Assembly: GCA_964247055.1 (NCBI GenBank)
Contig: OZ176050.1
Location: forward strand, 11,098,001 to 11,162,000
From: Paragordius varius
Lineage: Eukaryota; Animalia; Nematomorpha
DNA length: 64,000 bases
Reading direction: 5' to 3'
Shown here piece by piece: positions 19,801 through 62,096 of this stretch (positions are counted from its first letter, which is position 1; the number at the start of each line of letters is the position of its first letter). Both the position numbers and the translations under genes were made by a program. The notes beneath the pieces were generated by a model. It searched no databases. It saw nothing but the letters and a program-made list of their open reading frames with translations, and was not told the DNA's origin.

Positions 19801-22800
19801 GTAGTACCCAAGTAGTTTATGTTCCTATCGTTTTTACACATACAACTGATGCATGTTGGGCCGCATTTAAACAAAGTATAAAAATTAATCTTGGATGTAC
19901 TTTTTCAAAATGTTAAAGACACACACATAAAAAATGATTAATATTTTTTAAATGCATAAATTAGATTTTTTAAGAGCGATTTATTCTATATAAGTTAAAT
20001 GATTACAATTCTAAAAAATATTATTGAGTGCGCTATCAATTTACATCTCTATTTAACCTATTCTTCAGCATAAAACGATAGGCTATATTTAAAATTCAAG
20101 TTATAAAAAATATTGCTTTTCTAAAAAAAATTTGTCCATATCTATGTTTAATTTTAAAACGAACTGGATTCGAAACAATTTTAATGAAATATTTTTGTGT
20201 GTTTTAGAGACTTTTATACAAATCGAAGCCATTGCCGATATTGGACGAGATGTGTTCCGCAAGGATATTTTCGTAGACATTGGTGGTGTTAAACAAACAT
20301 TTCACACTCCATTCGTCATAGATCTCACAAATAAGGTTTGAAATATTTTAAACTAACTGCCTCTATTAAAAAAGATAATTTAAGCTAATTTTATTTAAAT
20401 GTATATATTTGATTTAGATTCATATATTATTTAATTAAGAATATGTAAATATTGCATAATTTTATTTAAATGTTTAGATTCGTTTTAGAGATATATCATT
20501 TAATCGGAAAATGTAAATTTAGTAATTATCTATTTTAAATGTAAAGCATATATGTATGATTAAACCAAGCAAAAGTAATAATAAATTTAAAATACAGTAA
20601 ATATAATAATCATATGCAAAAAACATATTAACAATATTATTTATTTAAAAATTAATTCTACCAGAAATGGTACTTTTCCATAAAAATTGAAACCCCGGAC
20701 CAAACTGTTGATTTTTTATTTCTAAATCCGTTTATTTTAAAGTACTCTATTTATTAATGATTAAATTTTTTAAAAAAATATTAAACCGATGTTATATTGT
20801 TAGGATTTTAGGCCATTAACATAACCCATGTGTTATTATTTTTTATATCTTAGGCATTACAAACCTTTAATTTATACATCAATATAACTGAAACACCCAT
20901 TATACCATTGAGCCGTGCTAGGAGTTACATATTTGGCTCTCCTAAAGCAACCATAGGAATAGTTGGTAAATAATTTAAACTTATTAATGCACTTACTATC
21001 TTTTAACAAATACATCATAAAATTTATTATAATATTTAGTTAGAGTAAAAATTTAATTGAGCACAAAACATAGAAAGTAAAAAACAACAAATATTAAGTA
21101 AAGACCAATTATTTTTTTAACCGCTAAATAAAAAGAAAAATAAATTGGTTATACACCCAATTTTATGGGATAGTAATTGATTCAGATGGTAAAAATATTA
21201 AAATACGGGTATAAAAATATAGTTTGGTTATAAAAAATCATAATGTCTTATTAATAATGTTTTATTTTATAATTTTGCTGTATATTATATAATTTTTTTT
21301 TCCATTTAGGTGATGTGGTAGGTCCCATGTTTGCTCATATACCTCTTAATGCCCGAAATATGTTAGATTTACCATATTGGAGTGGAGATCATATTGCTTT
21401 TAATTTAGGTGTAAATTTTTACACGCTGAGATATTTACAAAAAACTACCTCATCCATACACCTTTCGGCCAACGAATTTTATACCGCTATCAAATATCTC
21501 AATATATGTAATAAGATTTTGTTTTAGTACATATATATTATCTTTCAGATTTACTCTATCAAAATTTTTATCTTTTTTTGATTGAAATAAAAAAACTTGA
21601 AATGTAGTAATATAGAAAACTAACATATTAAATTTATAAGGGCAAAATGTGGAAACTAAAAGCCCTTGTTTCACAAAGAAATTCATACTTTTTTAAACCG
21701 TAATTTTTTTACCTGACATAAATTTTTTTACAATTTCTATTATAATTCGTTAAAAATTTCGCTTCAAGACAATATAAATAATAAGTTTTTCAAAAGTATG
21801 TTCAGAAAAAATATTTTTTTTAGTTTTTACCTTATTCCTTTATAATTTATTCAAAATTTACTATATATATATATATATATATTAGATTATCAAAGACTGT
21901 TGAGTCACATGAATTTAGTTGGTGGATTTTGTCAATTTCCTAAAACATTATCACCTTCGAGTCGCATAATGGATGAATTAAGTGGCAAACAACAATATTG
22001 TCCGACTGATATTATGTATATAATATGATATTTTTATACTTTTTAAAAAAAATTTCCATTCATCTAAAGAATGATATAACTTTAAAATCTGTTCACATTT
22101 TAATATATTTAAAAATTGGCTAATGTTTTATGGTGAACATGAAATATAAGGATAACGTGTGGTAAAGATTCTAAACTTTATCTAGAGCAGTCAACTTAAA
22201 AAAACGTCTATATTTTTAAACCATTTTTTAATATTTTCGCGCCCAATTTCAAATATACCCTTTTCTTCGGTTTAAAAAACTTTGTTTTGGTCATTCGTAT
22301 CATTTTTATTTTTTTGACATGGAAAACGTTTTGTTAAACTGGGAAAATGATTTAATCAAATGGGATGGCGTTTTTTCAGTAAAAGTAAGAATTAGTATTA
22401 TACCATTTCCCAGTCAATCGAAACGTTTTCCCAGTCAATCAAAACATTTTCCCAGTCAATGAACGTTTTCCCAGTCAATCGAAACATTTTCCCAATCAAT
22501 GAAAAACGTTTTCCCAGTCAATCGAAACGTTTTCCCAGTCAATAAAAACGGTTTTATTTTTGATAATAAATATCAAAACAAGATACAAAAATAACTTTTA
22601 ACCATTATCAGCGTAATTTTAGGATAATATTTTGCAAAAAAAACACAATTATTGAATGACAATTTTTCCCATATACTCCACTACACAATCTTTAACTTAT
22701 CTTTGAAAGCTATATTTTATTAGCTGGATGAGTATTTGATGGTTTGAGAGATTTTTTAAGAAAATTAATAATTTATTTATTTTATCAATCGTTCGCATTA

Positions 22801-25800
22801 ATATTCGGGGCTAACCTAAAATATCCAAAGTTTCGGATTGAATTATAAAATTTAAATGTATTTTCAACTCTTTACAATCAAAAAGGAAACTTTCAACTTT
22901 GTCCTTGATCAAAATACTGTTTTAAAAAATAATTTTACGATGAAAAAGTTGATTTTAATGAAAAAATATATTGGATATAAATACATAATATTATCGTACG
23001 CAAGTTTATGTTAATTTGAGATGTTTAAGTATTAAATTTTAATGTTTAAGGGCTAACTGAAACACAAATGGTATATAATCTGATTACCTATATACAATGC
23101 AGCGATTATAACGAGTTGTTAACCTTTTCTGTGACTATCTGGTGGTCAATAATTAAAAATATTAAACCATTATTTTCTCGTCTGCTTTGAATTTATTGGA
23201 TGAAAACCTTACGTTGTGCATACATCAAATTATCTATATAAGGTATTCATTTAATTTAGTAATATTTTAGTAATGTCAGAAACAGGAATCAAGAAAAAAT
23301 TAGTTATATCTCAACAAGATAGAAAACGATTAGTAAAACGAGTTTTTTTGATGGAGAATGGACTGTGGATGTATCAAAGGATTTAGATATAAACTATAAT
23401 ACTGCTCGTCAAATTATGTATAAATATAAAAAAAACAATAGTTCAGAAATTCTAACTCGTGAAGGCACTAAAAACAAAAAATTACGGAAGATATTATGCA
23501 TTTCATAGATAATAAACTAACTTATCAGCCGTCATTAACAATTAACCAGTTAAAAAAATTTTTGGAAGATGAAAAAAAATAAAATTATCTAAATCCTCTA
23601 TAGACCGAGTAATCAAATCTTTAAAAATAACTTTGAAGTTAGCCCATCATCATGAAAAAGTCAATGATCCTCAAATAATAGATTTAAGGAAAAAATACGC
23701 AATATGGTTTACACAATCTTTCTCCGATGACTTATCAAATATTATTTATTTGGATGAATGCGGTTATAATAACCATATTAGAAGAAGCCAAGGTCGATCC
23801 AAAAGTGGCACGAGAGCCAATATTGTGGTGCCTAGCGTAAAAGGCAGAAATATCACTTTTATTGGAGCTCTGTCATTAAGAGGTATGATTTATTACGAAA
23901 TAGAAAGCCAAAGAACAGTCAATTCCCAACGCTTTACAAGTTTTTTTGATGGACTTTGTGAATATTTAAAGCGGGACGATATTCAATATAATTTTATTAT
24001 GGACAATGCACGGATTCTTAAAAAAAATGAATTAAAAGGTAGAGCTGATTTATACAAATACAAAATTGATTTTTTGTCCCCGTACAGTTATATGTTGAAC
24101 CCAATCGAAATGGCATTTTCAAAAATGAAAAATTTTGTGTGACAAAATATTATATTAAATAATATGAATGCGAATGTGGAATTATTGAATCTGATAAAAT
24201 TGGCAGCGGGCTCCATAACATCGGAGGATAGCAGAAATTATTTTCAAAAGATAATGACAAATATGGTAAAGGCGGCAGCCGGTTTACCCTATATGTGATC
24301 TTTTTATAACATACACAATAAATGAAAATCATTTTTTAATATATTATCTCAATTTGTCTCTTTAATAAAATCAAACAATGATTGATTTATTCAGGTATAT
24401 TTGTACAGTAATAGTTCAACTTTTTAAAAATAAGTCATTAAAGATTGTGTAGTGGAGTATATGGGAAAAATTGTCATTCAATAATTGTGTTTTTTTGCAA
24501 AATATTATCCTAAAATTACGCTGATAATGGTTAAAAGTTATTTTTGTATCTTGTTTTGATATTTATTATTAAAAATAAAACCGTTTTTATTGACTGGGAA
24601 AACGTTTTTATTGTCTGGGAAAACGTTTCGATTGATTGGGAAAACGTTTCGATTGACTGGGAAAACGTTTTTATTGACTGGGAGAACGTTTCGATTGACT
24701 GGGAAAACGTTTCGATTGATTGGGAAAACGTTTCGATTGACTGGGAAAATGTTTCGATTGACTGGGAAAACGTTTCGATTGACTGGGAAAATGTTTTGAT
24801 TGACTGGGAAAACGTTTATTTAGACTGGGAAATGGTATATAATAAAATTAAAACTTTAGAGATAAAACGTAGTAAATAAAAACATTTTATGAATATACTT
24901 TTTTACCTTGTTGTCTTCTATACAACCTAAATGATTCAATCGTCCGTTTATTTGATTATGGACAAATTATGTTTTATATTACATGGCAATAATAATTAGA
25001 ATTGGACAACAAAGGGTATTGTATATAAGTTTATTCAATTAAATTTATATTGAAATATCCCATAAATATTATATTTTTGTTCAACATTTAAAAAGTCTTA
25101 ACTCATTATTAATGGTTATGCTATACACAGAAAAACACAAAAATTAATAAATCGCCTTATTTATTTTTATTGTAACGCTTTTCGCTAGAAAGCGCCAAGT
25201 CTTTAATATATATACCATTTCCCAGTCTAAATAAACGTTTTCCCAGTCAATCGAAACATTTTCCCAGTCAATCGAAACGTTTTCCCAGTCAATCAAAACG
25301 TTTTCCCAATCAATCGAAACGTTTTTCCAGTCAATCGAAACGTTTTCCCAGTCAATCGAAACGTTTTCCCAGTCAATCGAAACATTTTTCCAGTGAATCG
25401 AAACATTTTCCCAATCAATAAAAACGTTTTCCCAGTCAATAAAAACGGTTTTGTTTTTGATGATAAATATGTATCAAAACAAGAATATAAAAACAACTTT
25501 TAACCATTATTAGCGTAATATTAGGACATAATTTCATATAAAAACATATTGAGTGACAATTTTTCCAAGTATATTCCAGTGGACAATCATTAATGACTTA
25601 TTCTTTAAATGTTATATTTTTAGAATTTGAGGTAAGATAATGTTTTTTATTTTATCGATAGTTCGCATTAATATTTGCGGAACGCTTCACAATAGTTTTT
25701 AAATATGTCCGGTTTGTCGATTAAAATACTGTCGGAAAAAATATCTTAACGAAATTTTTTTTTGATAAAAATGTTTTTGATTATAAAATATTTAATAAAA

Positions 25801-28800
25801 AGGATATTTGACTAAAACAAGGGTGTCCAACTAAATGCCTTCGCAGGCGCATTTTTAACTCAAAAAGCACACGGTTCCTCATTCGAAATATATACGGGCA
25901 TTTACATAATTTTATAAGACTGCAAAATACAAACACAATATAACAATTTTTTTAATTCATTACCAATTTAATAGATTCATTCATAATAATTGCGTAAGAA
26001 ATATGAATATTACTAAGATTTTGTGGGCATATTTTTGCATATGGTTTTCCAAATTTTTTGCGGCCCGCACAAAGATACTCGGAAGGCCGCCTTAGGCCTC
26101 CGATGAACCAAATGTTAAATATTATAAAATTAGGGTCAAATTTATGTTTAAGATCCAATATTAAGTGTTAAATGACCTTTGTGATAAAAATGGTATATTT
26201 TTATAAATTTTATTTATTCCTCCGTAACTATAGATTTTTTAAGTTAGCCGCATATATTAATGCGAACCATCGATAAAATAAAAAACATTATCTTAACTCA
26301 AAATCCAAAAATATAACATTTAAAGAATAAGTCATTAATGATTGTCCACTGGAATATACTTGGAAAAATTGTCACTCAATATGTTTTTATATGAAACTAT
26401 ATCCTAATATTACGCTAATAATGGTTAAAAGTTGTTTTTATATTCTTGTTTTGATATTTATCATCAAAAATAAAACCGTTTTTATTGACTGGGAAAAAGT
26501 TTTTATTGATTGGGAAAATGTTTTTATTGACTGGGAAAATGTTTCGATTGACTGGGAAAACGTTTCGATTGACTGGAAAAATGTTTCAATTGACTGGGAA
26601 AACGTTTCGATTGACTGGGAAAACGTTTCGATTGATTGGGAAAACGTTTCGATTGACTGGGAAAACGTTTCGATTGATTGGGAAAATGTTTCGATTGACT
26701 GAGAAAACGTTTATTTAGACTGGGAAATGGTATATACCATTTCCCAGTCTAAATAAACGTTTTCTCAGTTTTCCCAGTCAATCGAAACATTTTCCCAGTC
26801 AATCGAAACATTTTCCCAGTCAATAAAAACATTTTCTTAATCAATAAAAACGTTTTCCCAGTCAATAAAAACGGTTTTATTTTTGATGAGAAATACCAAA
26901 ACAAGCATATAAAAACAACTTTTAACCATTATTATCGTAATATATGGAGATAATTTTTAAAATGACAATTTTTCCAAGTATATTCCAGTGCACAATCATT
27001 AATGACTTATTCTTCAAATGTTATATTTTTGGAATTTGAGTTAAGATAATATTTTTTATTTTACCGATGGTTTGCATTAATATTTGCGGAACGCTTCACA
27101 ATAGTTTTTAAATATGTCCGGTTTGTCAATTAAAATACTGTCGGAAAAAATATCTTAACAAATTTTTTTTTGATATAAATGTTTAAGGATTGACTAAAAC
27201 AAGGGTGTCCAACTAAATGCCTTCGCGGGCGCATTTTTAACTCAAAAAGCACACGGTTCCTCATTCGAAATATATACGGGCGTTCACATAATTTTATAAG
27301 ACTGTGATATACTAACACAATATAACAATTTTTTTTAATTCATTACCAATTTAATAGATTCATTCATAATAATTGCGTAGGAAATATGAATATTACTAAG
27401 ATTTTGTGGGCATATTTTTGCATATGGTGTTCCAAATTTTTTGAGGACGCACAAAGATACTCGGAAGGCCGCCCTAGGCCTATAAAATTAGCGTTAAATT
27501 TATGTTTAAGATCCAATATTAAGTGTTAAATGACCTTTGTGATAAAAATGGTATATTTTTATAAATTTTATTAATTCCTCCGTAACTGTAGATTTTTTAA
27601 GTTAGCCGCAAATATTAATGCGAACTATCGATAAAATAAAAAATATTATCTTAACTAAAATTCCAAAAATATAACATTTAAAGAATAAGTTATTAATGAT
27701 TGTGCACTGGAATATACTTGGAAATTGTCATTCAATAATTGTGTTTTTAATTAAAAATAATATCCTAATATTACGCTAATAATGGTTAAAAGTTGTTTTT
27801 ACATTCTTGTTTTGATATTTATCATCAAAAATAAAACCGTTTTTATTGACTGGGAAAATGTTTTTATTGACTGGTAAAATGTTTCGATTGACTGGGAAAA
27901 TGTTTTGATTGACTGGGAAACGTTTCGATTGACTGGGAAAATGTTTCGATTGACTGGGAAAACGTTTCGATTGATTGGGAAAATGTTTCGATTGACTGGG
28001 AAAACGTTTATTTAGACTGGGTGGTATACATATATATATATTTAATATTAGTTTAACTTCACACATTGTTCGTATCTTACATGCCTTGAGTCGAATGAGT
28101 GAATGGGAAGCCGACTCTGCCATTTATATTCAACCTTCAATCATTGCAAAAGCCGTGGCACAAATTGTTGAACACCTGAATAAAAATCGTAAAACTTCGG
28201 ACATATATCAATATCAAATGAATCCATCTTACAATTACAATAATAATAATGATGAAATAATGATAGATTTAAATGCGTGTTTAGCCTTACTTGAAGCGAA
28301 TGACGTTGCTGGAGAGGTATTTTTACAGTAACATTTGAAATTAACGGACAAATTGGAAAAATATAAAGATAATTTACTCTTTAAAAGATTGTTTTTCTTT
28401 TTTTAAACTTGATTTTTATAATTATAAATTAGAATTATAAATTGCTAAGTATGAAGTAGAAATGTATATTGATGTTACAATTAAATCTGTATTTTCGATT
28501 GCTCTAAACAAAAACAAAAAAATGGCTGTCTCTTGAAAAATGTCTTTAAATTTTAAGTTTTGTTTATATATATTAATATTTACTGTATCTAAAATTTGGT
28601 ATCTCCTTGAATAGATTGTTTGACCTGTTTGACTTTTTCTCAAATAGCTTTTGGTAACTATAAATAAAGGTTATTTTTTCTGCCGAAACTATATATTATT
28701 CATATTTTATAATCCAAAATCGTTTTTTTATAAAATAATAAAACTGCTGAATATGGTTGATAGGACAATAATAAAATATATAAGAAAAATTTGATTTTTA

Positions 28801-31800
28801 TCATCCACACAATTATCTATTTAAAATTTTATTTCATAATTGTTGTATTGATAAAATGTTTATTTTAGAACAAGCACGTTTAGCCTAAAAAACATCCTTT
28901 TCACTAATTTTTCTCATATTTTTCATTGAAAGTTTTTTTTATGCCCAACTTTATTTCGCAAAGCCTTTTTGCATTCTTGATGCCTTATTAATATTTTGTT
29001 TGATTATAAATTCTAATATTAAAGATTGGATCTAAAGCCTATTTTTGGCGACTGAGATTATTGGATCGCTTGGCAAAATACGTTTTGGAACAGATAAATG
29101 ATAACGCAATACAGAATAATATAAATAAACCCCCAAGCACCGTAGTTGACAATTATCTAAAAAACGATGCCCTATCTTCAAACAGAATACCATATCCCAT
29201 ACCTGGTAAAAAAATTAAGTAAAAATTGGGAATACAAGGAATAAAATGTTGTAAATGTTGAAGTATATTTTTTATTTAAAGGCATGACTTAAAACGTCGG
29301 TTGTGAAATATGGGTGCATGTACGTTAATCCCTAAATTTTATACTTCAAACGTTAATTAGGTTATATGTGAAAAACAGGAATTTAAAAATATTGTTGTGT
29401 TTATATAAAAATCACAGCTTTTTTTAGGTGTCTTTTTAAAAAACTTGTACTCTTTTACAAATTTTGTTTATTCCATATTTCCATTTTTATATGGGGTATT
29501 TTAATTTATCATTAAATTTTGTTATTTAAATACTTGTTATAGCAAATCAAATGGAAGCTTATGCCGCCAACAAAACTTATATTTTAGCCCTTGTGAGTTA
29601 TGCCCTCTCCCTGTCAAATCACGTTAAAAAAGATGAGGTTTTGCATTTATTACTGTCTCATGCTAGGAAAACAGGTATGTATACATAAAATTAATATACG
29701 TTTTTTAACCGATCTATATATAATAATAATTGGTTTAAAGTTTAGTTATTCATGTTTAGATATAATTAATTTATATATAAAAGGAAAAATAATTATTATT
29801 AAATGAACCAAAAGTTACCATTCAAATTGGTTAAGTAGTTCTAAAAGTGTAACAAAGTTTTTAAATTTTATAATTTCACTTTTACATTAATGTTGTTATC
29901 ATTATTATAGCAAAGATCGTTGTCGATTTATTGCTTTTTCGAAGGTATATTTTATCCAGTTTATTCGAGTGAGGGCGAGTGCTGTTAGCTGTTGTAAAGA
30001 AAGATTGGTTTCTTTGGTTAGGTTTTCGATCCAGCGCATCTTGCAGCGTCCACGTTTCCTGGATCCTTCGACCTTGCCTGTCATTAGTTGGAATTCCAAG
30101 TCATTAGCTCTGGTAATGTGACCAAAGTATAATAATTTCATTTTGAGGCACATGCCGATCAGGTGTATCTCGGGATATATTTTGTCAAGGATTACGGTGT
30201 TTTTTATTTTGTCTTTCCAGGTGATTTGCAGTATTTTCTGCCAGCACCACATTCAAAGGCGTTAATGTATCTTTCGTCATCCTTTTTTATAGTCCAACTT
30301 TTTGATGCGTAAGGCATACTAGGGAATATTAGGGATTTAACTAATCGGATTTTTGTTTTGAGTTTGATGTCATGTGACGACCATAGTTTATTGTATTTTA
30401 TCTTTTTGATTTAGCGATTCCTATTCTTCCTCTGATGTCGGGGGTGCTGTTGTTATTCGTGTTTATAAGACTGCCTATATAAGTGTATTGGGAGACTACT
30501 TCGATTTTTTGGTTGTCAAAGGATAAATTGTTGTAATGATTCTGAGCGGTTATATTCATAATTTTAGTTTTTTGTAGTTGATCGTCAGACCAATTTTTGA
30601 CATTCAGTTGAAAATTCTGTTAGAGTTTTTTTAGGTTGACACTGAATTTGACAGCAGTATAGTGTCGTCAGCATGGTGAAGTGATGATATGATATTGCCG
30701 ACGATGCTTATGCCATTAGCTTTGTCTATATTTCTTAATACGCTTTCTATGCAAACGTTAAAAAGAGTCGGTGAAAGGACGCATCCTTGTCGTAAACCAT
30801 TGTTCATTCGTATCCAATTACTTGTGCCGTGTGGGGTTTTTATGGTTAATGATGAATTGGAGTAAAGGGATTTGATGATGTTTAAAATGTGATCTGAAAC
30901 TCCAATCTGAGATAGTGCCTTTCACAGCGTGTCGTGCTTCACGCTGTCGAAGGCCTTTGAAAAATCAATGAAGCAGATATGGGTTTCTTTCTGAAATTCA
31001 ATTTGTTTTTCGAATATCCAACGTATATTGCTGATCATGTCCCTGCATCCGCGATTGGTTCTAAATCCCGCTTGGGTATTAGAAAGTTCGGCTTCAATTA
31101 TGCCTTGGATACGCCTGTTAATTATTTTGAGAAAAACTTTTGATCTTGGTTGATTAGCGCTATAGTTGTTAAATGATTTAGGATCGCCTTTTTTCAAAAT
31201 GGTAGGTCTAAAAACTACAAAGGCCCAATGAGAAAGGAAGATGGAGATATCATTACAGACAAAAAACACTGGTGGAACAATGGGAACAATATGTATTATA
31301 AAACTATATTGCACCAGCCTATCAAACGCCGATAAAAACAGTATATCTATCAATATGACCCGCAGATCATCAAAGAAGAAGTTGAATGGTCGCTCAACCA
31401 TTCCCCAAACAACAAATCTGAGGGGTACAACGATATTCCAACCGAACTCATTCGTTTTATCCCAATTCATATCCTAACTGACTTATTCCAAAAGATATTT
31501 GCTCACGCCTCATTCCCCCAAGATTGGTGCAATCAATACTCACCTTCATCTTGAAAAAAGGCGGTCCTAAATCATTTAACAACTATAGAACTATAGCGCT
31601 AATTAACCAAACCTCAAAAGTTTTCTCAAAATAATTCACAGGCGTATCCAGTAGGATTTAGAACCAATCGCGGATGCAGGGACATGATTAGCAATATACG
31701 CTGGATATTTGAAAAACAAATCGCACTTCAGAAAGAAACCCACATCTGCTTCATTGATTTTCAAAGGCCTTCGACAGCGTGAAGCACGACACGCTGTGGA

Positions 31801-34800
31801 AGGCACTTTTCAGATTGGAGTATCAGATCATATTATAAACATCATCAAATCCCTTTACTCCAATTCATGATTAATGTTAAGTTTTATACAATTTTTTTAC
31901 ATTAATATTAAACATGAGTTTTTCATTTTTTGGACTGGGAATATTTAAAAGTATTAACCTTCTCATCATGAATGCATTTATGTTAAATGCTTTTATAGCC
32001 AATTTTAACTCTATATACAGACATATATAATATATATTTTAGACAAATCTTTGTAGGTCAAAAAATACTGCGCATTAAAAATTGGATTTTTACAGTTTTT
32101 ATATTTATTTATCGCTTTTTAGATGATGGGCTTATGTATTGGTGTGTTGAAGATATCCCAGGTCTTCCTAAACGCTTTCAAAATAATCAACCTCATTACG
32201 GACCATTGCAGTACACAACATGGCAAGCTTTATGTGTTGAAACTACTTCTTACGCTCTAATGTCTATACTGCTAAATAGGTAGTAATTTTATTATATTTG
32301 GATGGATAATTTTAGGACTCCATATTCGGAGTTTTGTATCCACGAAGTAGTTTCCTCCATAAATTACGATCTTTACATTGTTCTGTGGAAAGGCTGCGTT
32401 GATTCAAGTCCATTTTTATATTATCATTATAAGAAAAGAGTCGTCCCTTTCTTCTATTGCCATCAACATTAATGTTATCAACAGTTTTTAAAGGATGGGT
32501 GGCGTCTCTTCTCTGAGTATGACCGTAGAGACGCAATCTGTTTGTTTGAATTATATAATCGATTTTATCGTTTTCTTTAATGAAAATTGGTATTTCTGGT
32601 GTACGAAAGCAGCTTTTGAGTATTCGATTCTCACTGGTTAGGAGTTTTGTTTGATTTGTTTTGTTTAATGCCCAGGTTTCAGAACTATAGGTAAGAGCAG
32701 ATCTTATTCCTGCCTTGTAAAGATACCATTTATTACGAATGTTAACATTTTTGTTTTGGAAAACATATTATAATTGATTATATTTTATCCAACCTTGATG
32801 TATTCTTCTTTTGATAGCCTTTTGTGGGCTTCCCTGAGATGATATGACATCTCCTAGGTATACGAAAGAGTCAACCAATTCGATGTCATGTCCATCAATG
32901 TTAAGTAGCTTTGGTCGATTAAAATTATTATTGTTTGGGTCTAAGCAATTTAAGCATTTAAAATTTATTACATTTGTTAACTTGTCTTTTATTTTAGAGC
33001 ACTTTTTGTGTACCCACAATTGACATGATATGCATTTAATGGAATTTGAACGTACTTCCTTACTGCAAATGGAACAGGGGTATCTGGGTGTTTCACTTTC
33101 ACCCGTTATCATTATTTTTGTTTTTGTGGCGTTTATGATCATTCCATATTGTTCAAGGCATTTCTTCCACTTGGAATATGTATTTACCAGTTGATCCCAT
33201 GATCGTGTCGTTATCACGAGGTCGTCGGCAAATAACATTTCCCAAGGGCATTCACTTCTTATGTCCTGCGTTGCCGCATCCATTATGGTTATAAAAAGGA
33301 GTGGACTTAGGACTGAACCCTGATGTAGTCCAGCGTTTGTTGGGAAATTGTTTGTATTGCCAATATTGGTTTCAACGTTGGTTGTTGTATTTTTATAGAG
33401 TAGTAATAAAATTTGTATAGTATGTTCTTCTATTCCCTTTTTACGTAGTGCCCATTGAATTGTGGAGCGTGGTATTTGGTCAAACGCACGTTCCAGATCT
33501 ACAAAGACATGGTATAGCTTTTGTTTCTTTTCCAGATATTTTTCTTGTAAGCGTCTTAGGATGAACAAGGGATCAATTGTGCTACTGTTTGGACGGAATG
33601 CAAACTGATTCGAATCTAAGTTTATAAGTTTTCTAAGCCTGTTTTCCAAAATATTTTCGAATATTTTAAGTGTGTGTTCCAGAAGTTTTAAAGGTCGGTA
33701 GGACGATGTTTTTAAACGATCGCCTTTATTTTTATAAATGGGGATTATTATGCTGTTCTTCCAATCGTTGGGAGTTTGGTTTGTAATTATTATTTGGTTA
33801 AAGAGTTTTGTCAGATACTCTGCAGTGTTTTTGATGGGTCGAATGAGGTCGACTGAAAGGCTGCTTGGGCCTGGAGCTTTGTTACTTTTTAATTTATTGA
33901 TTGCAGTTGTGACTTCATCTATGGTGATTTCTTGTATGGGACCAGCTACTGGTGAAACTATGCTAATTTGTTTGGTCGGGTTTACTTGGTTGAGTTGTTT
34001 TTCTAAGTTCGTTTTCCAAATTTCTTTGACTTTCGAGGGATTCGTTATTATATTATCATTATCATCTTTAATACATTTTATGGTTTTAACATCTTTATTA
34101 CTATTGTTAAGGTTTTTGAGTCTTTTAAAAATCGTTTGGTTTTTAAAGTCTTTTTCTAAACTTTCAGCGATTTTAACGGATTTTTCATTCATAGCGTGTC
34201 GAATGGCTTTTTGGACCTCTCGTTTTTTGTTATCATAAACTTTTTTATCATCATTATTTTTCGAGCTTTTCCACTTTTTATATGCTTCGCCTTTTTCACG
34301 CAACAATGGTTTTATTTCATTTTTCCACCACCAGCTTTTCCGTTGCCTCATTGGTTTGGTAAAGCCACAATGTATTTTAGCAGATGTTAGAATTGTGCTT
34401 TTAAAATATTTCCATAGAGTTTCAACATTGTTTTTTTCGGGAAGATGTAACTCTGTGTTTTTGGTATATTCGGTTAATAATTTTGAATCCTTTAACTTTG
34501 CTATATTTATTTTTTGGGGTTGGAAAGCGGTCTTACGGCTTTTCTCAATGATTAGAAATGCTGTTATTAGCTTGTGTTGATAGGAGGGTTGATAGTAAGT
34601 TTTGATGTTTGTTAAATGTTTCCTAATGTTTTTGGGAATTAATATGAAGTCTATCATAGATGAGTGATCACCAGAATTATAAGTTATGTGCTGGTTGCTT
34701 TTTTTTCTTAAAATGGGTATTTGCGACTATGAGTTGATTTGCAATGCAAAAGTCTAACAAACTCTCGCCCATCTTATCGAGGGTTCCGACGCCATTTCCA

Positions 34801-37800
34801 CCATGCACGCCATGGTATTCATTACTATCATTATTAATATGGCAATTAAAATCACCACCAACAAAGGTTTGTTCGCTAGAAGAAGTTTTGTTCATCAAAT
34901 CATAGAGGGCTTCCCAATATTCGTTTTTTGATGCTTCGCTTAGACCAGATTGTGGTGCGTAAGTTGAAACTATATTTATTATATTATCATTCATCAATAT
35001 TTTTATTTGAATCATTCTTGGATTATGTCTTATTACATCGATTATGTTATCACGATAGATGTTTTTAATAAAAATCGCAACACCACCTTGTCCCTTGTCA
35101 TTTCCTTTATAGAATAATGTATAATCGTCTAAGTTTTTCAATCCCTCTCCTTTCATTCTGGCCTCTTGGATGCAACATATATCTATATTGTTATGGCTAA
35201 GAGTGTTTGTTACCATTAATATTTTGTTAACTAGGGTACCCACATTCCATGTGGCAAATTTCAGAACTGTTTTATTATTATTACTAACGGTATTATTTAT
35301 TTTCATAGTTATTTATTTTGGTAATTATTATTATTCAAAGTATATATCAAAAATATATAGTATATAAAAGTGTAAATAGGAAATATTATCAAAATAATTA
35401 TTATTATAAGTTGTATTATTATTGTTATTTGAGATGTTGATAAGGTTTTAGTGTTCTTTCATATTCATATTCATATTATTATACTTCATGGTTTATTGAG
35501 GCAATTTTTTACGTAACACATGCCCTTGTGTACAACTAATGATTTTACAGATCATTAGAAAACTGGCCTTTGCCGTTAGCGCATTTTCATGCCCCAGCCA
35601 ACACCCCGGGGAGGTGGCAATAGGACTTTGTTGGCCTTTATTATATTTCTTTAAATTAATTTATTATTTCATTAAAAATGTTTTTATGGTTCTACCTATC
35701 ATAGTGACTCCTATTATGGGAAGAATCTCAACCTTAAACGATAAAATAATTTAAATAGGGCTTATTAACGTGATTAATTGGTTTATATCCCATGTTTTTT
35801 AAATAAGCTTATTTTTAGAAGTTTCATTATTAGGGGTCTGGACAGTATATGCCATTTTATATATATTATTACAAAATCTGTGTTACTTTATTTTAATAAT
35901 TCCATTAATAATAATGAATATTAGATCGCCAATGTTTGAATCTAACGTACTTTCTATCATTAAGTGGCTAAATCAGCAACGCAATCATATGACAGGATTC
36001 GAATCTACAAGGGTTTATTTTATATATTAATCACTGATACTTTTTAACTTTAATATAGCATCAAAAAATGCTTTTAATTTAGTATTTTAGATAGTATATT
36101 ATATTCATTTAGCGAATAATAAATATTTTAAAAGTTTTGGAAAAAATCATCATTATACTAGCAATCTTTTGTCTTTATTTCCTTTTCCACACATTCTAAT
36201 ATATTCTTACACTTTTTTTATAAATACCTAATTATATTTGTGTGTTGAATTTAGGATACCCTTATAGCTTTACAAGCCTTAACTAAATACTCCGAGGCAG
36301 AATTAAGTCGTCCAACGACCGAAATTAGTTTGGAGATTCAAACCACTTCAGACACCAAATTTAATCCAAACGTAAGTATAAATGCTGGCAACTTGGCTCA
36401 ACTACATGGGTACCGTTTAAAAAAGGTAATTAGCAAAATAGTTTAAAATATATTGTTTGTTTACATATTATTTTAGTCATAATTTTTCGGTGCTATATAC
36501 AGTCGTAAATATGAAAAGTTAAGGGGAAAAATTTTGTAAAACAAAATTTGTATTTTTAGAATAAAGAGCCACATAATAATATAACCATAATTTGATTTAT
36601 TAATGATGCCGATACGATTTGGGTTATTGGCGGTGCTGTATATGGATTTACAAATTTTACTTAACAAACTTATATTTTAAATTTTATTATCTTTGTTTAA
36701 TATACCATTTGCACTTCAAGAGTGTCCTTGAACACTTCAAGTTGGTCCTTGAACACTTCAAGTTTGTCCTTGAGCATTTCAAGTTGGTCCTTAAAATTTT
36801 TAAATTTTGATTTTAACCATAATTTTTGGATGTATTTTTTTGTTTTATTATTTTTTAACCTAATTTATCTATTATTTGTATATTTATTTAAAAATAAAAA
36901 AATTATTCAAAACTACTTTTTTGTTTCAAACTAATTTTTTTCCAATTTAACAAAATTATAACTTTAAAATGTTTTCATTTTAAAACTAAATAATAAACAA
37001 ACTTATATTATTTTTAATTACATGTTAAAATCTTATAAATATTTAATATAATTATAAAATATTAATAATATACGGCTCAATGATTAAATGTTGATATTTT
37101 AAAATTTATCGTAAATAATAAAAAATAGGTTAAAAACGATAAATTATATAAATGATATACGATTTGATTGATAAAAGTTAAAAACAAAACAAAAAAGTCA
37201 AAGGACCAATTTGAAGTGTGTTCAAGGATCAAATTGAAATGTTCAAGGACCAACTTAAAATGTTCAAGGACCAACTTGAAGTGTCCAAGGACCTGAAATG
37301 TTCAAGGGCACTTTTGAAGTGCAAAAGATATACCATTTCGTTGAAAAAAATAACTTGTACTTATGTTAAAAGTATTTTTACACAAACTCATAATATATTG
37401 TTATATTCTGATTGCAAAGGTGTGGGGTAGCATTAGAGTTACAGCTTCTGGTCGAGGTTTAGCATTGTTTCAACTTTCCGCCAGTAAAAGCGTAGATTGG
37501 CGCCAATATGTTAGGGTCCCGGCCGTCCCAGCTTTTGATTTAAAGCATTCCATCGCAACGAGTGGTTTCAATTCCAGTGTCATGCAATACCATATATGTA
37601 CAAGGTAATATTTACTAGTGATGAAAGATTATTGAGTTATCATTGTTTATATTACTCGTTCAAATTGCAACTAGTAGGGATAAAAATTTAAATTTGTGTG
37701 AAATCAAGTGTGATTTGTTTTCGTTTTTTCTTGCTTAAATTTTACTCATCCTAAGCCAAAAACACAAAAAATTTATACTTTCTAACGCGCTTTTAAATAT

Positions 37801-38438
37801 TTATTTCTAGTAGCAATTCAAATGACCAATATAACTAATAAAATGGCTGTTTACTGTATTCTATTTAAATATATATCAATTTGTGATTCAAAATTTTGTT
37901 TAAATCTGTGAAGTTATTTGTTACGAATATGGTTGTTGATTTTAACATTTATAAATTTTTGAGACGATTTTTTAGAAGAATTTGATTATAAAAGTATTTA
38001 TGATACTCAATTACTAACATTCATATTTTGAAATAAAATATTGATTAAAATTTTAAAATTATTTGTGTGATAATAGATGGGTACAAATTGATGTTAGTCC
38101 AATGAGTGATATGGCTATTGTAGAAATTGATATACCCACAGGTTTCACAGTGCAACAAAATGAACTGGATAGGTAAATTTTTTCAATATAAATTATATTA
38201 TCATGGTAATTTTATTTAAATGTCAATTTTATTATATTAATGTATGTAATCAATTTTTAATAGGTCTATTGAGAGGAAATATGGTAATACGTATCTGCGA
38301 AAGGGAGAATTTATACCAGAAAATTCTAAAGCCGTTTTTTACTTTGATCATGTATGTATTTACACTTAAATGAATTTTATTTATTTTTTAAACATATCAA
38401 AATTAATCATACTAAGCATTTTATCTATTGATTCTATT

Positions 38439-38476
<38 letters not shown>

Positions 38477-42976: not shown

Positions 42977-43027
<51 letters not shown>

Positions 43028-52000: not shown

Positions 52001-52344
52001 ATTGAGATAAGCTTGAACAGGGGCTAATCCTCGACCAACTAAAAAAGATTCATCAGCTTTTTGTCTATACATTTGCATCATATCCTCGGTTGAATAGATT
52101 GCAACCGATTTTATACCCAATTCATGGCATGCCCGAAAAACACGAATGGCAATTTCACCTAAAGATATTGTAAAAAAAATAAGTTAAAACCTCGGTTAGC
52201 AACTAAGATCTTGTTAATTTTCCGCCGTTTACTGGATGCATCAATTTTCTCCTTAACAGTTTTATTATTTTTAACATCTTTTGGGGTAAAAAAAGAATAG
52301 CATCTTATATACTTTGGTCGGTATTTTCCAAATAATAGAAACAT
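40009..52344 (-). CDS. PC: Pyruvate carboxylase, mitochondrial type; about 21-22 exons
   Basis: Basic N-terminal leader, then [144 protein letters not shown], biotin site SAMKME, and stop TAG 40009-40011. Confidence 0.96.
42979..43024. repeat. (AT)n microsatellite in a PC intron
   Basis: About 46 nt of pure AT repeat. Other TA runs lie at about 21862, 38449, 42697, 47212 and 62441. Confidence 0.9.
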
Positions 52345-52480
52345 CGAAATATCTACATCTGGTAAAGCAGATGTTATTTGAAATTATGGGAAAAGCGAAT
52401 ACGCACTACAAAAATATACAGTTTTTAAAAAACTTTAGGGTCTAAGGTATTTTATTAAGTTTATTAGAGTTGCTTTATAA
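52345..52480. promoter_or_regulatory. Probable compact bidirectional promoter / 5' UTR region
   Basis: Only 136 bp separate the divergent start codons of PC (52344) and VPS54 (52481). Contains the hairpin ACATCTG-GTAAAG-CAGATGT. Confidence 0.55.
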
Positions 52481-55400: not shown

Positions 55401-58400
55401 GCAATTCGGCAAACAGATATGCCATATCCACAAGACATTAATCATCAATCGTTTGATGAAATACTCCCATCTTTTGATATTTCAAGTCTTATAGCTTATT
55501 TCCACAAGCTTTACAGGCAAATGGTTCCCTTGCTTATTAAAATTCGGGTATTAATTTAAAAAATTTTGCAATTATAATAATATTTTAAACATTATTTATG
55601 TTTGTATTGAAATATATGGATTTATATTTAATTGCTGTCTTGATCTATCTATAATCTCAGATATATAATTATTTGAACATAAGGTATCCAAATTTTCAAA
55701 AAATTAAACGATAAAACACAATCATCGATATTTTATTAACCATCCACCATCGTAAAAAGATACTCAACAAATTTTTGCGTATAGATTGATAAAAGTATGT
55801 TTATATATTTTATTATTATAGCTTCTTGCCACTATATTCCTTATATTAGCGCATAATTGTGTTAATATAACTGCTAGTCCATGTCCCAATAATAAAGTTA
55901 TGAATGGCTTGGGTCAATGGTTAAATCAACAAATTTTAACAACCACCATGAATAACATTCATAAATATCGGTAATTAACAATATTATATACATTAATAGT
56001 TAGAGATTAGTAAATTTTAGCTTGCAATTTTTTTATTTTATATAAAATACTATCTAATTATAATTAGTTATAATAATATTTCCCTTTCTTTAATGGACTT
56101 AGTCAAAAAAATATTATTTTTCGCATCATGTTTGTTAAAATCTAAAATTGAACTGTTTTGTTCAAATTAAATAGATAAATAAATATTGTTTTTTTTTTTC
56201 ATTCTTTTGGTTTAAAAAGATGTCTTTGACACTAAAAATTATTTAATTTGTAAGCGCATACATGCATTTACCTGGTATCCAAAAACTCTGGCTTTAAAAA
56301 AATTAAAAAAAGTTAACTATTTGGTATAATAATAAATATTTTGCCTAATTAATTATGGACACGTTTTAACTAATATGTATTAATATAGAACTATGTCAAG
56401 TGATAAACCTATTACCCCGCCTGAAAGTGAAATCAAAAAGGTTATGTCAAAATTGCATACGGCATATTCTAACATACACAATTATGTTCGGGAAGAATTT
56501 GTCAAAATTCTGCAAAAATGGAATCTTTCATTCGTAAGTTACAAATATTTTTTGAGTACTACATATTAATACTTTTATAATTTTTTTAATTTTTTTCATT
56601 AAATTAAGCAATTAAATGGAAACAATAGTTCATCAATGTATAGTTGGAAATATATTGTAAATTAAATAATTTGGTTAAAATTAGATTTATATATTATATT
56701 TTAATTTCAGTAATAACTGAAAAATAAAAAAATTTAATAAAATGTTTATTATTTTTAATATAACGATAAAATGTTTATGTGTTTTATCATGCCATATATC
56801 TTATTCAAAAAAGAAAATATGTAATTGATTATTTTAAAAATATTTTTATGCGATTAATTACAGCATGATTCAATTTTTGTTTTAAAAAAATTTAAAACGA
56901 TAATTATGTATATACCCTAATATATAACATATATAATACCATATACGAGTTAATTTTTTAGAAAAATAATATATTTCTTTGTATATATTGAAATATTTTC
57001 TTTAATATCTTTTTATGTATCTTAGAATCCTCTATTTCTAACGGATAAAAAATTTAATACCACATTATCATCGAATACTTTAAAATTTTGCTCCACAAAA
57101 ACAACCTCAATCAATAAAACAGATATTTACCCCGAACTTTTTGAATTGGCACAAATATTAAATGAAGAAAAAAACACTGAATTAACGCAATTATTTCTTA
57201 GTTTATCACATTTACAATCTTTTTATCAATCATCCATAAATTATATTTCAAATATTCTCTTACCTTTATCGACAATGCCTGTTTCCAGTATTGCTAATAC
57301 CCAAAATTTAGAAGAAAAATTAATTAATGGTACTTTAGAAAATATCATAGATATAGAGAATTTTGAAGAAAACAAACCTCTTAAAGATCCTAAAAATATG
57401 CCAACTAACCATATTAGTCAATTACAGTCAAACGATGAAAGTAATCTATCAAATGATAATCATAATTCAAATATAAATCCTTTTTCTGATGATGATGAAA
57501 ACACCAAAAATTTTAATGAAGCAAAATTTGTTAGTAATATAAAATTAAGCGCGGAAAATGGTGTAAATGGTCATATACCATCAGATAATCAGTCGGACAT
57601 ATCTTCAAACAGCTATATATCACATAAAAATAATAATGATATTAATAATGTCATGGAAATAAAAAATGATGATTTACCTAAAAGCAATTTCGATTACGAA
57701 AGCAAAGACTTGGCTGAAAACAAATTTTTGAAGCAAATACAAAAAATTGTTTTTGGCGTTTTGGAATATATCGTTCAAAAGATTAGGAATGATTTGAAGT
57801 TTGTATCTAAAAATTTAGTTTATTTCTTTTTAACTTTGTTTAAATTGAATTTTTAACAACTCCTGGCGATTATGCCTCTGTGCAAAAGTTTGAGATTTAA
57901 TATTTATTTTATACTTTATTTACGACGTATTTCCGAATCTTATTAATCGTTGTTACCCCGACAATGAGTGTATTGTAGTAATATAGAATTTATTTATCAA
58001 TAATAAAAGTGTATATTTATAAAAATATCATTGCATTTTTGATTTCAGATGCGTACAAAATAAAGAACGGTGGAAACCATTGGATACGATCAACCCATCT
58101 TTCATCAAAATATTTCAAAACGGTAATTACTTTTTTAAAATTATTTTTTAAACATTATGTAATTTATCGAAATATATATTTTTTATTTTTTCTTGAATGC
58201 TCACCTTTTTAATCATCTAATAGATTTCACATCTATACCTGCCACATATAATGGAGTGGATTATGATAATGACAACTTTAAGGATATAAAAACTGACAAT
58301 TTTATATTTCAAAACTTTTCATACCAATTGACAAAGTATATTTATTTAGTTGAGTTTAAATGATATAACTTTAATTTAATTAATAATGATTATATTTGTA

Positions 58401-61400
58401 TTTATATTTAGTTCTACCCTACACTTGCTACTAATTTTGACGATATTATTCCACCTATCTCGCCACATACCATATGCGAGGAAGTCATTGTTTAATACCA
58501 TAAATCATTTGCTCAAGGTTATTTGATTGGAAAAAAATTTTTTTATAAAATAAGCTTAGGATTATTATCGTTTTTGAAATTTTATTGCCTTTAAATTTAG
58601 AAAGTCCATTTTGAATGCAGTAAACTTTTATTTATCTAAACAAATCAACCGCACGAAAAAATGACATTTATATAGAGAGAGATTACCTTTAAAATTATGT
58701 AAAATATTCTTTTTTATGCGAAAAAAGCACTTAATATTTACGTTATAACTTAGCTAAAGCTGAATTTCGTCAAACCCTATTAAAATTATTATAAAGGATG
58801 AGGCGAGCCGGTTCAAAGGTTTTTTAATATTGGTTATTAGGGATAGTGAAAAAAATCGCTTAAAATAGTTTTTAGCATCTCAAAAAAAATACAGGGCATA
58901 ATTTCCCTTACAACAGAGCTAATTCTTTAAAATGTTTCATGACAACTATATTTTAATTTATATCACACAATTAGTCATTTAACCACAACTCTTATGACTC
59001 TCTCCTTGGGGCTGGTGCAATACAAACAGCCGGGTTGAAAACTATTTCAATAAAGCATTTAGGTATAAATTATTTAAAATTAAATATATATTTTAACATA
59101 TTACATGATTACATATCATTTACGATTGAAATTCACCCTCGAACAATTCAAACTTACCCTAAAAATAAATTATGTCTTTTTGGGCTAATATAACTCATCA
59201 TTAATATGAAATATATTCTCATGGCATAGTTTATTATTTTTTCAGTTAATTTTTTAAAAAAATCATTTTTTTAAAAATATAAAAAAACATAGGTAATTTT
59301 GAACTTTTAAAAACACATAATTTATTTTAGGGTGAATTTATATCGTACGAGGGTGAATTTGAACTATAAATGGTATATTAATTTAAATAATTTTTGGCAG
59401 TTATATTGCACAGTAATCTACAACTTTTAAGTCATTTTATTCCGGTGTATTACAATACATGGTCATCCCCCTCACATAGTCAAACAATGCACAAAAATGG
59501 AATCATTAACTCTAAATCAATTTGTAAATATTCTCAACAAATAATTAAAGTACGTCTTATTTTTATCCTATTATTCTTGCGCATTGAGCGCTTTTTTTGT
59601 TAGTTTTTTCCTTAGTGTAGTATATTTCTATGGTAAATTATTTGGTAATAGGAAATTAGTTTAATGTAAAGTGATTACATATGGCTTTTATATGATTGAT
59701 TTATATTTATGTCTACCATTTATTTTCGTTATAAATTTTTTAATCTGATTATAATAAATTTTCAGGAGTATCAAACCCATTCTGAACATATACAAATGAA
59801 AATCTGTGAAATTATGGAACAAAATTTTAACAAATACATTTCAGAGGTAAGAAAAGAATCTTTATTATTATATATTTGCAACATATGTACGTATATGTTT
59901 ATACATACTTGAAGAAATTTTCAGCGCAAAAAACGAAATATAGCTACTTTAATAAATTTTATCGCTTGTATGGATACCGAGATTAAATCTTGGTAAATAA
60001 GATTAAACAAAGGTTTGGCGTGGGCGTCTCTGCATCGATTTGGGTCGTCGAAGTGTGCTTGCTTTAATATATACCATTTAAAATTTAAATTCACCATTAA
60101 ACAATTCACATTTACCCTTGAACTACTCAAATTCACCCTCGAATAAAATATATGTTTTATTACCTATATTTTTATATATTTTTAAAATTTAAAATACTGA
60201 AAAAAATAACAAACTATGCCATAAAGATATATTTATATTAATAATGAGTTATATTAGTTAGAAAACACATAATTTAATTTTAGGGTGAATTTAAATTTTT
60301 CACGGGTGAATTTGAACTGTAAATGGTATATTTTTGGGACATGTTCTCTCCGTTATGCATTTGCACGATATGAGCGTACTATTGGACACGCATTTAATTT
60401 ACAATAGGATTTAATAATTGTATCCTTTGTAATCTGGGGGCTATTTATGTAGCAAACCATGAGATTTTCTGTGTTTTTGATTGATTCGGGTTTCTGTTGT
60501 TTTTGTGAGCGAGAGCGTTACAAGCATAGGTCAAAGCAAGGTGGATCCCAACTTCTTACAGGTTGACTTTGTTTTTATATGGTTATGGATTTTTTTTGTG
60601 AGCATAAACTTAATAGATATATTTTTATCCACCCATTTCTTAAAAGATGAGATAGTGTAGTGTTTAGGTTACATACATCAGTAAAAATGATCCCTAAATA
60701 GGAGAAATTCATTATTATTTCATACTTGTTATATTCAATTATTGTTCTTGGGATATTATCGTTTTTATTATGTGATTGGTTTTTGCAGGGTAAGCAATTG
60801 AAATTATTATTATTATTGATAAGTTTTAAATATATTTTGGATCAGGGCAACGCTTTGACGACCTGGATGCCCACGCCAAACTTGGTTAAATCTTATCCAT
60901 CAAGATCTAAACTCATTATCCCTACATCCTGAACACGTTCAGGACAAAGAATTATGCTCTGCTTATTTTAAATTATTCTAATTATAATGATTATCGCTTT
61001 AATAAAACTAAGCTACTAAATATTTTTTTCTTAACTTACACATTTTTTTATTACCAGTGGGAAGTCAAAGCTCCGACCCCTTCTCCGGTGTTTATGGTTT
61101 TGGTCAAGCAATTAGATGGCCTTTATGACAACCTTTTACGTTTTCTGGACGATGAATCAACAAAAGTTTATTATTTCTATATTTTTTATAACCTTATTAA
61201 TTTTATATAGTTTTGAGCCTATAAAATACCCAATTATACTCATTTATATTGACCGAGTCCCATTATTTTTGATAAATTGAATACATAGCTGAGTAAAACT
61301 ACAAATGGTTGAAATTCAACAATTTGTATCTATCATACAGTTCATTTAATTATGTACAAAATTTGTTTTATACATTCGCTTCTGTATTACCAATTTTCAA

Positions 61401-62096
61401 ACAATTGGGTTCTGTATATTTTTATTGGCCTATCTTAACCCAATAGTTTTATATAAATTATACATGTTTTTGGCATTTAAGCAATTTATAGCGTGTATCT
61501 GCAACAAAATAAAATTTATAAACATAACATTATACATGCTATTTCATTATATTTTTACAGTATATTATTTACAATTCAATATCACCCTCGAACAATTCAA
61601 ATTTACCCTCAAATAAAATATATGTTTTTTAATTTAAAATTTTCTAAATTTTTATATATTTTTGAAAAATAAAAATTTTGTTTAAATTAAATTAATATTG
61701 AAAAAATAATTAACTATGACATTAATATATATTTTTTATTAATAATGAGTTATATTGGTTCGATAACACATAATTATTGTTAGGGTGAATTTGAATTGTT
61801 CAAGGGGGAATTTGTTCGAGGGTGAATTTGAATTGTTCAGGGGGGAATTTGAATTGTTCAAGGGTGAATTTGAACAATAAATGGTATATATATTATATTA
61901 CAAACAGGCTTTGATGGAGTCAACAAACTTGACAATCAAAAATTTGTTGAAATCAAAAGTCCAACAACTCGGCATAAAGAATGATGGGGGTCCCAGGTGT
62001 GGCGTTTTAATATCCGAACTGCTATATTATTACAAACATATATCACGTTTTGGGTTAAATACCAATTTGAATGATTACGATTTTTTGTGGGAATGA
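52481..62096 (+). CDS. VPS54: Vacuolar protein sorting 54 (GARP complex subunit)
   Basis: N-terminal NIPAALNDP and HEKLTKYLDAIENQIAINVS. C-terminal LLGAGAIQTAGLKTIS, NLQLLSHFIP, EYQTHSEHIQMKI, WEVKAPTPS and GIKNDGGPRCG..W, stop at 62096. All resemble metazoan Vps54; some internal exon edges are approximate. Confidence 0.87.
59114..59375. mobile_element. MITE family C copy 1 (TACCATTT-type terminus; 21-bp unit GGGTGAATTTGAATTGTTCGA)
   Basis: Right end GGGTGAATTTGAACTATAAATGGTA|TA; degenerate left end TATCATTT; inverted repeat units; homologous to 60072-60328 and 61563-61886. Confidence 0.72.
59930..61000. mobile_element. Two decayed, oppositely oriented LINE (CR1/L2-like) C-terminal fragments
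   Basis: Minus 59930-60068 reads HFDD..DAHAKPLFNLIYQDL and plus about 60850-60960 reads RFDDLDAHAKLG*ILSIK, resembling the post-RT 'AHTEPLFK.L.IL' motif. The two share TTTGGCGTGGGC.TC in inverted orientation. Confidence 0.35.
60072..60328. mobile_element. MITE family C copy 2
   Basis: TA|TACCATTT at 60070 and AAATGGTA|TA ending at 60330, with inverted 21-bp units. Confidence 0.8.
61563..61886. mobile_element. MITE family C copy 3
   Basis: Right arm has several GGGTGAATTTGAATTGTTC units ending AAATGGTA|TA; left end is degenerate (TATTATTT). Confidence 0.75.

Follow-up and report, generated by a model that had tools for sequence, protein, structure and literature searches.

What kind of transposon closes its ends with arrays of units whose length is fixed while their sequence is not? 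The question is raised by a window of 64,000 nt from the nematomorph Paragordius varius (positions 11098001-11162000 of the first contig, C1, of a 110.6-Mb assembly in 44 contigs, which was searched genome-wide). A sequence-only reading of this window had placed in it seven transposable elements of three sequence families, and each of the seven is there, at most a few bases from where it was put: three of family A, one of family B and three of family C (Table 1). Each is flanked by TA, ends in a terminus of TACCATTT type and carries tandem units of 21 bp in its two inverted repeats. Degenerate ends are few, as had been claimed (B right, A3 right, C1 left and C3 left).

We conclude that A, B and C, together with a new family D, are four sister families of one IS630/Tc1/mariner cut-and-paste lineage, accompanied by more numerous non-coding MITEs (miniature transposable elements with inverted repeats). 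In their anatomy they are Tc1/IS630-type elements whose putative transposase binding site is repeated many times over, head to tail. From sequence we infer binding of these units, its stoichiometry and a role for the inner units, and we give a probability of about 0.65 to phased, multi-site binding of transposase along the arrays. This reading is favoured because unit length stays constant despite sequence turnover, and because MITEs of ~260 bp retain 2-3 units per end.

Four families and their transposases

Transposase partners were found by searching the genome with the transposase piece of the window and reading the flanks of the matches. Every array type, A to D, has its own transposase. 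Partners for B and C, which might have encoded unrelated enzymes, exist and encode related ones (49-62% identity). Family A has ~15 transposase copies, 75-93% identical to the window copy and mostly broken; one locus (L042) keeps an open frame of 335 codons, the last part of which departs from the other A copies. Family C is the only one with several uninterrupted frames, four of its loci having open 341-codon main exons. The three copies of family B are all broken, while family D (unit TTTTTTCAAGCAAACGCAACA, end TACCATTTTTCATGC) has one copy with an open frame of 341 codons. In B, C and D, but not in A, a GT...AG intron of 22-24 nt is predicted from the DNA a few codons after the ATG, and its removal restores the frame; such introns are unusually short for an animal. 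They are predicted at L035:3146-3172, at L032:2770-2791 and, on the minus strand, upstream of L033:3685. Protein searches were all made with the main exon; the spliced first exons of B, C and D were read in scripts only, and the family B protein used for identity values was pieced together from three frames with an X at each junction.

The enzyme is a DDE_3 transposase (Pfam, E = 1e-22), and families A, C and D, as well as two more distant families of the same genome, E and F, score 108-116 bits against NCBIfam NF033545 (IS630 family transposase; cut-off 100). It had been called DD34E, correctly: D161, D245 and E280 do not vary, and 34 residues separate the last two. A profile of 16 family members matched the paired domains of Pax6, Pax5, Pax8 and Prd in the PDB over residues 21-126 (best E = 7.6e-7), and its remainder matched the catalytic domains of SB100X (Sleeping Beauty) and Mos1. 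An AlphaFold model (pLDDT 79) has two three-helix bundles, one at residues 14-55 and one at 71-115; between them runs a disordered linker with an invariant GG motif (G62-G63), and an RNase H-like domain comes next. In fold the model is closest to full-length Mos1 transposase (E = 8e-12), and it also matches the SB100X catalytic domain. Its helices are placed much like those of PAI and RED in Sleeping Beauty, whose GRRR AT-hook is paralleled by the linker motif (PMC7827188). In Pfam, HTH_32, PAX and HTH_Tnp_1 were weakly matched, and PF01498, the Tc3-type helix-turn-helix (HTH), was not found in the family transposases. The closest database proteins, 38-43% identical, come from Strongyloides papillosus, microsporidia, Hermetia illucens and metagenomes, the last without a name.

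The terminal 10-mer was counted against controls. With at most one mismatch, TATACCATTT has 41 matches in the window; shuffles gave 24.3 +/- 4.7, none of 100 reaching 41. In the whole genome there are 9,805 exact copies of the 10-mer and 2,090 of its reversed control. Family-specific termini number 450 for A, 1,497 for B, 5,627 for C and 231 for D, and the reversed pattern gave 0 in each case. Their sum of ~7,800 agrees with the excess of the 10-mer over its control; at roughly 3,900 elements, it explains a large share of the short repeats of this genome. The first 100 listed TATACCATTT sites comprised 37 of C, 16 of B, 8 of A and 7 of D (68 for the four families), 5 array-less MITEs and 27 others. 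The control predicts a background of ~21%, so that this sample leaves no room for another large family with arrays.

Non-coding copies are far in excess, the ~4-5 coding elements of family C standing against its 5,627 termini. The ends of the B and C MITEs match those of coding elements (L034 and L032, respectively). TA precedes the A-D ends with few degenerate exceptions (the CA flank of C1 in the window; L035:1775), and the two bases before it vary. Since no empty insertion site was recovered, we infer a TA target-site duplication from flanks only. The TA flanks, the inverted repeats and the hundreds to thousands of copies bear out the earlier view of these sequences as transposons.

The coding C element at L032:1022-4266 (contig C9) is a 3.2-kb near-perfect palindrome, with two 1,583-bp arms one base apart, an ~80-bp spacer and, in each arm, a complete transposase gene reading outward. 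Further C palindromes lie at C2:4375639-4378831 and on contig C1 near 8.655 Mb and near 13.996 Mb. Because copies at different loci are 98.7-99.5% identical, a recent spread of the palindromic form is suggested.

Two local departures from the general distribution of termini were seen on contig C1. Four identical family B termini, at C1:2598792, 2604384, 2609977 and 2615577, are spaced by 5,592-5,600 bp, and a B element seems to be embedded there in a tandem repeat of ~5.6 kb. The first 1.8 Mb (C1:1-1830000) hold four TATACCATTT sites only, below the control rate, against ~89 per Mb genome-wide; this is a chromosome end differing in composition or content.

Unit sequence, unit length and the enzymes

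Elements of families A-D are built in a single order: TACC, then unit 1 at nt 5-25, further units from nt 26, nt 47 and onward, and the mirror image at the other end. Unit 1, a slightly altered copy that starts with ATTT, lies at the position to which the binding site of Tc1 transposase is reported to have been mapped (~nt 5-26 of its inverted repeat). Arrays hold 2-27 units per end, contiguous and spaced by exactly 21 bp; in the window itself the spacing is exactly 21 in 48/53 cases. The MITEs examined retain at least 2 units per end.

When the units are compared in the register set by the terminus (consensus units in Table 1), A and D agree at 14/21 positions (shuffle P = 4e-4), B and C at 17/21, and the cross pairs at 7-10/21. 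This register is the best of the 21 rotations for 5/6 family pairs; for the weakest pair, B-D, another rotation gives 8 matches against 7. The sequence-only reading had counted 15/21 between B and C, a value that the consensus units replace by 17/21. It had also held A to be unalignable to B and C: the likeness is indeed weak, at 9-10/21 in the anchored register, yet it is there, and A aligns clearly with D.

The transposases are related in the same way as the units. Over their full length A and D are 49% identical, B and C 59%, and the other pairs 44-45%. A maximum-likelihood analysis groups the transposases as ((A,D) 94/90, (B,C) 100/99), all four joining at 100/98. Unit similarity gives the same grouping; repeat and enzyme phylogenies thus agree, strongly for B-C and moderately for A-D. 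Identity between families is 36-49% in the DNA-binding half and 46-65% in the catalytic half. The faster divergence of the DNA-binding half fits the earlier proposal that unit sequence turns over alongside the DNA-binding domain. In each family, the unit has diverged along with its own transposase, and cross-mobilisation between families is therefore unlikely.

Conservation of the period was examined beyond A-D by scanning JGI metagenome contigs with the family alignment. This yielded 80 loci with 20-43% identity to family C; the metagenome loci placed on the tree have 27-46% identity to the nearest of A-D. Tandem Repeats Finder reported 56 non-redundant arrays in the 80 loci, and the period is exactly 21 in 39 of them; among the remainder are three of 20 or 22 and three of ~41, 42 or 62. 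An array of period 21 is present in 27/80 loci, often at both ends and inverted, and array-bearing loci fall in most deep branches of the tree. Unit sequence differs in almost every lineage, and the GC content runs from 26% to 49%. The turnover of sequence at a constant period, proposed from the window, is thus seen beside distant relatives as well. Shuffled controls of these loci gave no arrays, and no period-21 array was found in 80 bacterial IS630 loci (24-35% identity). Termini vary in the wider clade (TACCATTT, TAGCATTT, TACAGG, CTACACC), and where external element ends could be read the array again starts about 4 nt from the end.

One metagenome sample, Ga0307474 (L059-L092), contains more than 40 distinct AT-rich contigs of the clade, of many lineages; presumably these come from one eukaryote very rich in such elements. 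No relatives were found among IMG/VR viral contigs with the patterns used. A protein atlas does list giant-virus clusters among look-alikes.

What the arrays may do

At 21 bp a unit spans two helical turns, so that transposases bound to neighbouring units would face the same side of the DNA and might coat the end as a phased multimer, the unit length matching the footprint expected of a bipartite paired-like domain. Only the outermost unit, beside TACC, would be positioned for cleavage; the inner units could recruit and concentrate transposase, aid the pairing of ends and provide specificity. Here is a lineage whose ends consist wholly of units of binding-site size in helical phase, with a length kept across transposases down to 27-30% identity. 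If the units are bound, the four families and the more than 25 metagenomic lineages would be a data set of co-varying protein-DNA pairs for paired-like recognition and candidates for mutually orthogonal transposon systems, and their synaptic architecture would be of a higher order new to the superfamily.

Several observations weigh against phased multi-site binding. Within a family the period is uninformative, since tandem duplication of a 21-bp unit keeps it automatically; what counts is solely its conservation between families whose units are unrelated. Varied periods in other members, which would have counted heavily, were largely not found, yet rare arrays of 20 or 22 bp do occur, one of 20 bp in L061 and two of 22 bp in metagenome contigs. 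Family E, 34% identical and in the same genome, has TACAGT ends and a 20-bp array that lies ~110 bp inside them, and family F (28% identity, TACAGT ends) has no array. Array-less TACCATTT MITEs exist as well. Many metagenome contigs are cut inside repeats, and absence of an array there means little. The sister grouping of A and D is moderately supported (94/90) and barely visible in the DNA-binding half (40% against 36-38%). Present-day activity is uncertain for family B, which has no intact gene, and for family D, which has one.

The elements of family E are 8.4-kb palindromes with twin transposase genes and TA + TACAGT ends, each end bearing five copies of the 20-bp unit CGGACAAATTTTTTTTTATA. 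They were found at three loci (L036, L037 and L038: C8 near 0.317 Mb, C11 near 1.385 Mb and C3 near 7.59 Mb).

A broader version of the multi-site reading is conceivable, though less likely than not. A-D and their metagenomic relatives would belong to a deep, unnamed eukaryotic clade of IS630/Tc1-like elements that assemble a phased-filament transpososome, with one transposase per two turns, a unit length set by the paired-like footprint and a drifting recognition code. Such a filament would stand in place of the dimer or tetramer described for Mos1 and Sleeping Beauty. Were this so, the clade would supply dozens of naturally orthogonal transposase-site pairs and a readable code of paired-like recognition.

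An alternative that we judge unlikely, but that has several observations on its side, is that only the terminal unit binds. The inner units would be neutral products of slippage or unequal exchange, kept uniform by concerted evolution, and the period would be inherited rather than selected. Unit number is compatible with this, as it ranges from 2 to 27 and differs from copy to copy and from one end of a copy to the other (9 and 18 in L014). A single site per end suffices in Tc3 and Mos1 (PMC7827188), and the array-less TACCATTT-type MITEs favour the same view. Neutrality of the inner units sits poorly, however, with a period that stays at 21 while unit similarity falls to 7-10/21 and transposase identity to 27-30%. 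Concerted evolution should also spread indels that change the period, yet 20- or 22-bp arrays account for only 3/56. In addition, C MITEs as short as ~260 bp keep 2-3 units per end in every copy examined, and the two arrays of one element often have equal numbers of units (11/11, 10/10, 9/9).

A mainly regulatory function, with the arrays acting as a sink for transposase (overproduction inhibition) or as a source of hairpins or small RNA that silence the family, appears improbable. Long inverted repeats, and the whole-element C palindrome, can fold back, and most putative binding sites do lie on non-coding copies, as the numbers for family C show. Such a function leaves unexplained both the fixed start of the array 4 nt from the cleavage site and the exact two-turn period across the clade. 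Chance inverted satellites or assembly artefacts, to which nothing beyond the AT-richness and repeat content of the window points, are ruled out for practical purposes by copies with defined ends that number in the thousands where the controls gave none, by cognate transposase genes, by invariant TA flanks and by inverted ends paired at element-sized distances.

Known systems and the setting in the window

Tc1/mariner transposons are the main tools of vertebrate transgenesis, and the recognition of their ends is known from elements with one to three sites per end. The DDE RNase H-like fold, the paired-like bipartite HTH, the TA flanks with inverted repeats and the NF033545 score are all features of IS630/Tc1/mariner elements. 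With Tc1-like elements of the inverted repeat/direct repeat (IR/DR) type (Sleeping Beauty, Minos, Paris, S and Bari), A-D share the superfamily, the TA target, a PAI/RED domain with an AT-hook-like linker and DD34E. IR/DR elements carry more than one transposase site, as a direct repeat, in each inverted repeat, which is needed for ordered synapsis in Sleeping Beauty (PMC7827188, PMC8834629). The usual number of direct repeats is two per end, and the three of Bari have been called almost peculiar by reviewers (PMC8834629). These repeats are separated by spacer DNA, whereas the units of A-D are contiguous, 2-27 in number and in strict 21-bp phase from nt 5; two or three spaced direct repeats per inverted repeat are not what A-D have. 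The termini differ as well, being TACC in A-D and CAGT in IR/DR elements, and the A-D proteins score as IS630-like (HTH_32, PAX, DDE_3) without PF01498. A-D therefore lack the strict Tc1 combination of CAGT/TACAGT ends with the PF01498 HTH, their ends being TACCATTT, unlike those of families E and F.

Long, internally repetitive inverted repeats recall the Galileo and Foldback-like elements of Drosophila, with arrays here of up to 27 units and the 3.2-kb palindrome of family C with its 1,583-bp arms. In Galileo, several sites for a THAP-domain transposase lie inside tandem repeats, and a higher-order multimeric synaptic complex has been suggested (PMC3688188). Galileo, however, is a P-superfamily element that has a THAP domain and a first site ~70 bp from the end, whereas A-D have DDE_3, TA and units starting after 4 nt. 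In place of the THAP transposase and the 7-9 bp target duplication of the Foldback/Galileo type, A-D have an IS630-type enzyme and TA flanks.

Bacterial IS630 elements share the TA target, and the transposases described here score above the cut-off of the IS630 model NF033545 and are 25-35% identical to bacterial members; the bacterial loci differ in having no 21-bp arrays (80 loci), while the elements described here are eukaryotic and three of their families have a predicted 22-24-nt intron of spliceosomal type. The window copies of B and C (257-628 bp) resemble Stowaway-like and other Tc1/mariner MITEs: short, non-coding, TA-flanked, present in high copy number and with ends in common with coding relatives. 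Stowaway-like MITEs have a single short repeat, whereas in B and C each inverted repeat is built of phased 21-bp units.

We found no account of 21-bp arrays in Tc1/IS630 ends in the searchable literature, Repbase and Dfam lying outside that search. Provisionally, then, the combination of a Tc1/IS630 enzyme, a TA target and contiguous phased arrays from nt 5 has no published description that we could find. New here are the partners of B and C, family D, the terminus-anchored register, the congruence of unit and transposase, and the clade-wide 21-bp period.

Table 1. Elements, arrays and transposase gene in the window (window coordinates), and consensus units of the four families
Feature	Position	Strand	Description
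A1 (family A, transposase-bearing)	22401-24838	+	TA flanks, TACCATTTCCCAGTC termini, inverted repeats ~290 bp, 97% complementary
A1 left array	22405-22555	+	6-7 units with small deletions; period 21, 7.1 copies
A1 right array	24578-24833	-	12 units, every spacing 21 bp
A1 transposase gene, degenerate	23273-24300	+	DDE_3, DD34E; frameshifts and one in-frame TGA
A2 (family A, non-autonomous)	25213-26732	.	inverted repeats ~470 bp; units 11 left / 12 right
A3 (family A, non-autonomous)	26735-28026	.	units 6 left / 8 right; AAA missing from right terminus
B MITE	36703-37330	.	628 bp; left terminus TACCATTTGCACTTCAAGAGTGTCC; units 3-4 left / 3-5 right
C1 MITE	59113-59375	.	left end mutated TATCATTT, flank CA; units 2 / 2
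C2 MITE	60072-60328	.	TA + TACCATTT intact at both ends; units 2-3 left / 2 right
C3 MITE	61563-61886	.	left end mutated TATTATTT; units 2 left / 3-5 right
Family A consensus unit (terminus-anchored register)			TTTTCCCAGTCAATCGAAACG
Family D consensus unit (terminus-anchored register)			TTTTTTCAAGCAAACGCAACA
Family B consensus unit (terminus-anchored register)			TTGAACAATTCAAGTTGGTCC
Family C consensus unit (terminus-anchored register)			TTGAACAATTCAAATTCACCC

The inverted repeats of the window elements are 88-97% complementary, and the B element and the three C copies (257-324 bp) contain no open reading frames (ORFs). A2 and A3 adjoin, with one TA between them. The degenerate right terminus of B has AGATA in place of TGGTA, and a perfect TATACCATTT at 37329-37338, with no array after it, abuts that end; this could have matched by chance or be what is left of the end of another element.

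Array-less TACCATTT-type ends also occur inside family A elements. A solo end at 23066-23075, ~670 bp from the left end, is present in most of the coding A copies examined, and an end of a second array-less sequence of this type lies inside the non-coding copies examined (26188-26197, in A2, and 27546-27555). Elsewhere (C1:2050106-2050560) this second sequence takes the form of a pair of inverted ends of ~455 bp. All of these look like old nested insertions that later spread with the host element.

The window has a GC content of 23-37% and very few long ORFs under the standard code, and tRNA and Rfam scans of it gave no matches. A long interspersed nuclear element (LINE) occupies 30922-35306 on the minus strand, with an endonuclease ORF at 34677-35306, a reverse-transcriptase ORF at 32768-34657 (RVT_1, E = 1e-33) and a second, partial reverse-transcriptase ORF at 30922-31470; this stretch is the only part of the window with a GC content above 34%. 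A ciliate genetic code, considered because of the 22-24-nt introns and a GC content of ~27%, was rejected: reading TAA/TAG as sense barely lengthens ORFs relative to a shuffled control, and neither codon occurs in the 341-codon transposase frames. A bacterial origin was likewise rejected on the very low coding density, the LINE with its endonuclease and reverse transcriptase, and two exons, one A2M-like and one of a choline/ethanolamine kinase (264 aa). The single match of the kinase exon is a protein of another hairworm, Gordionus (39%).

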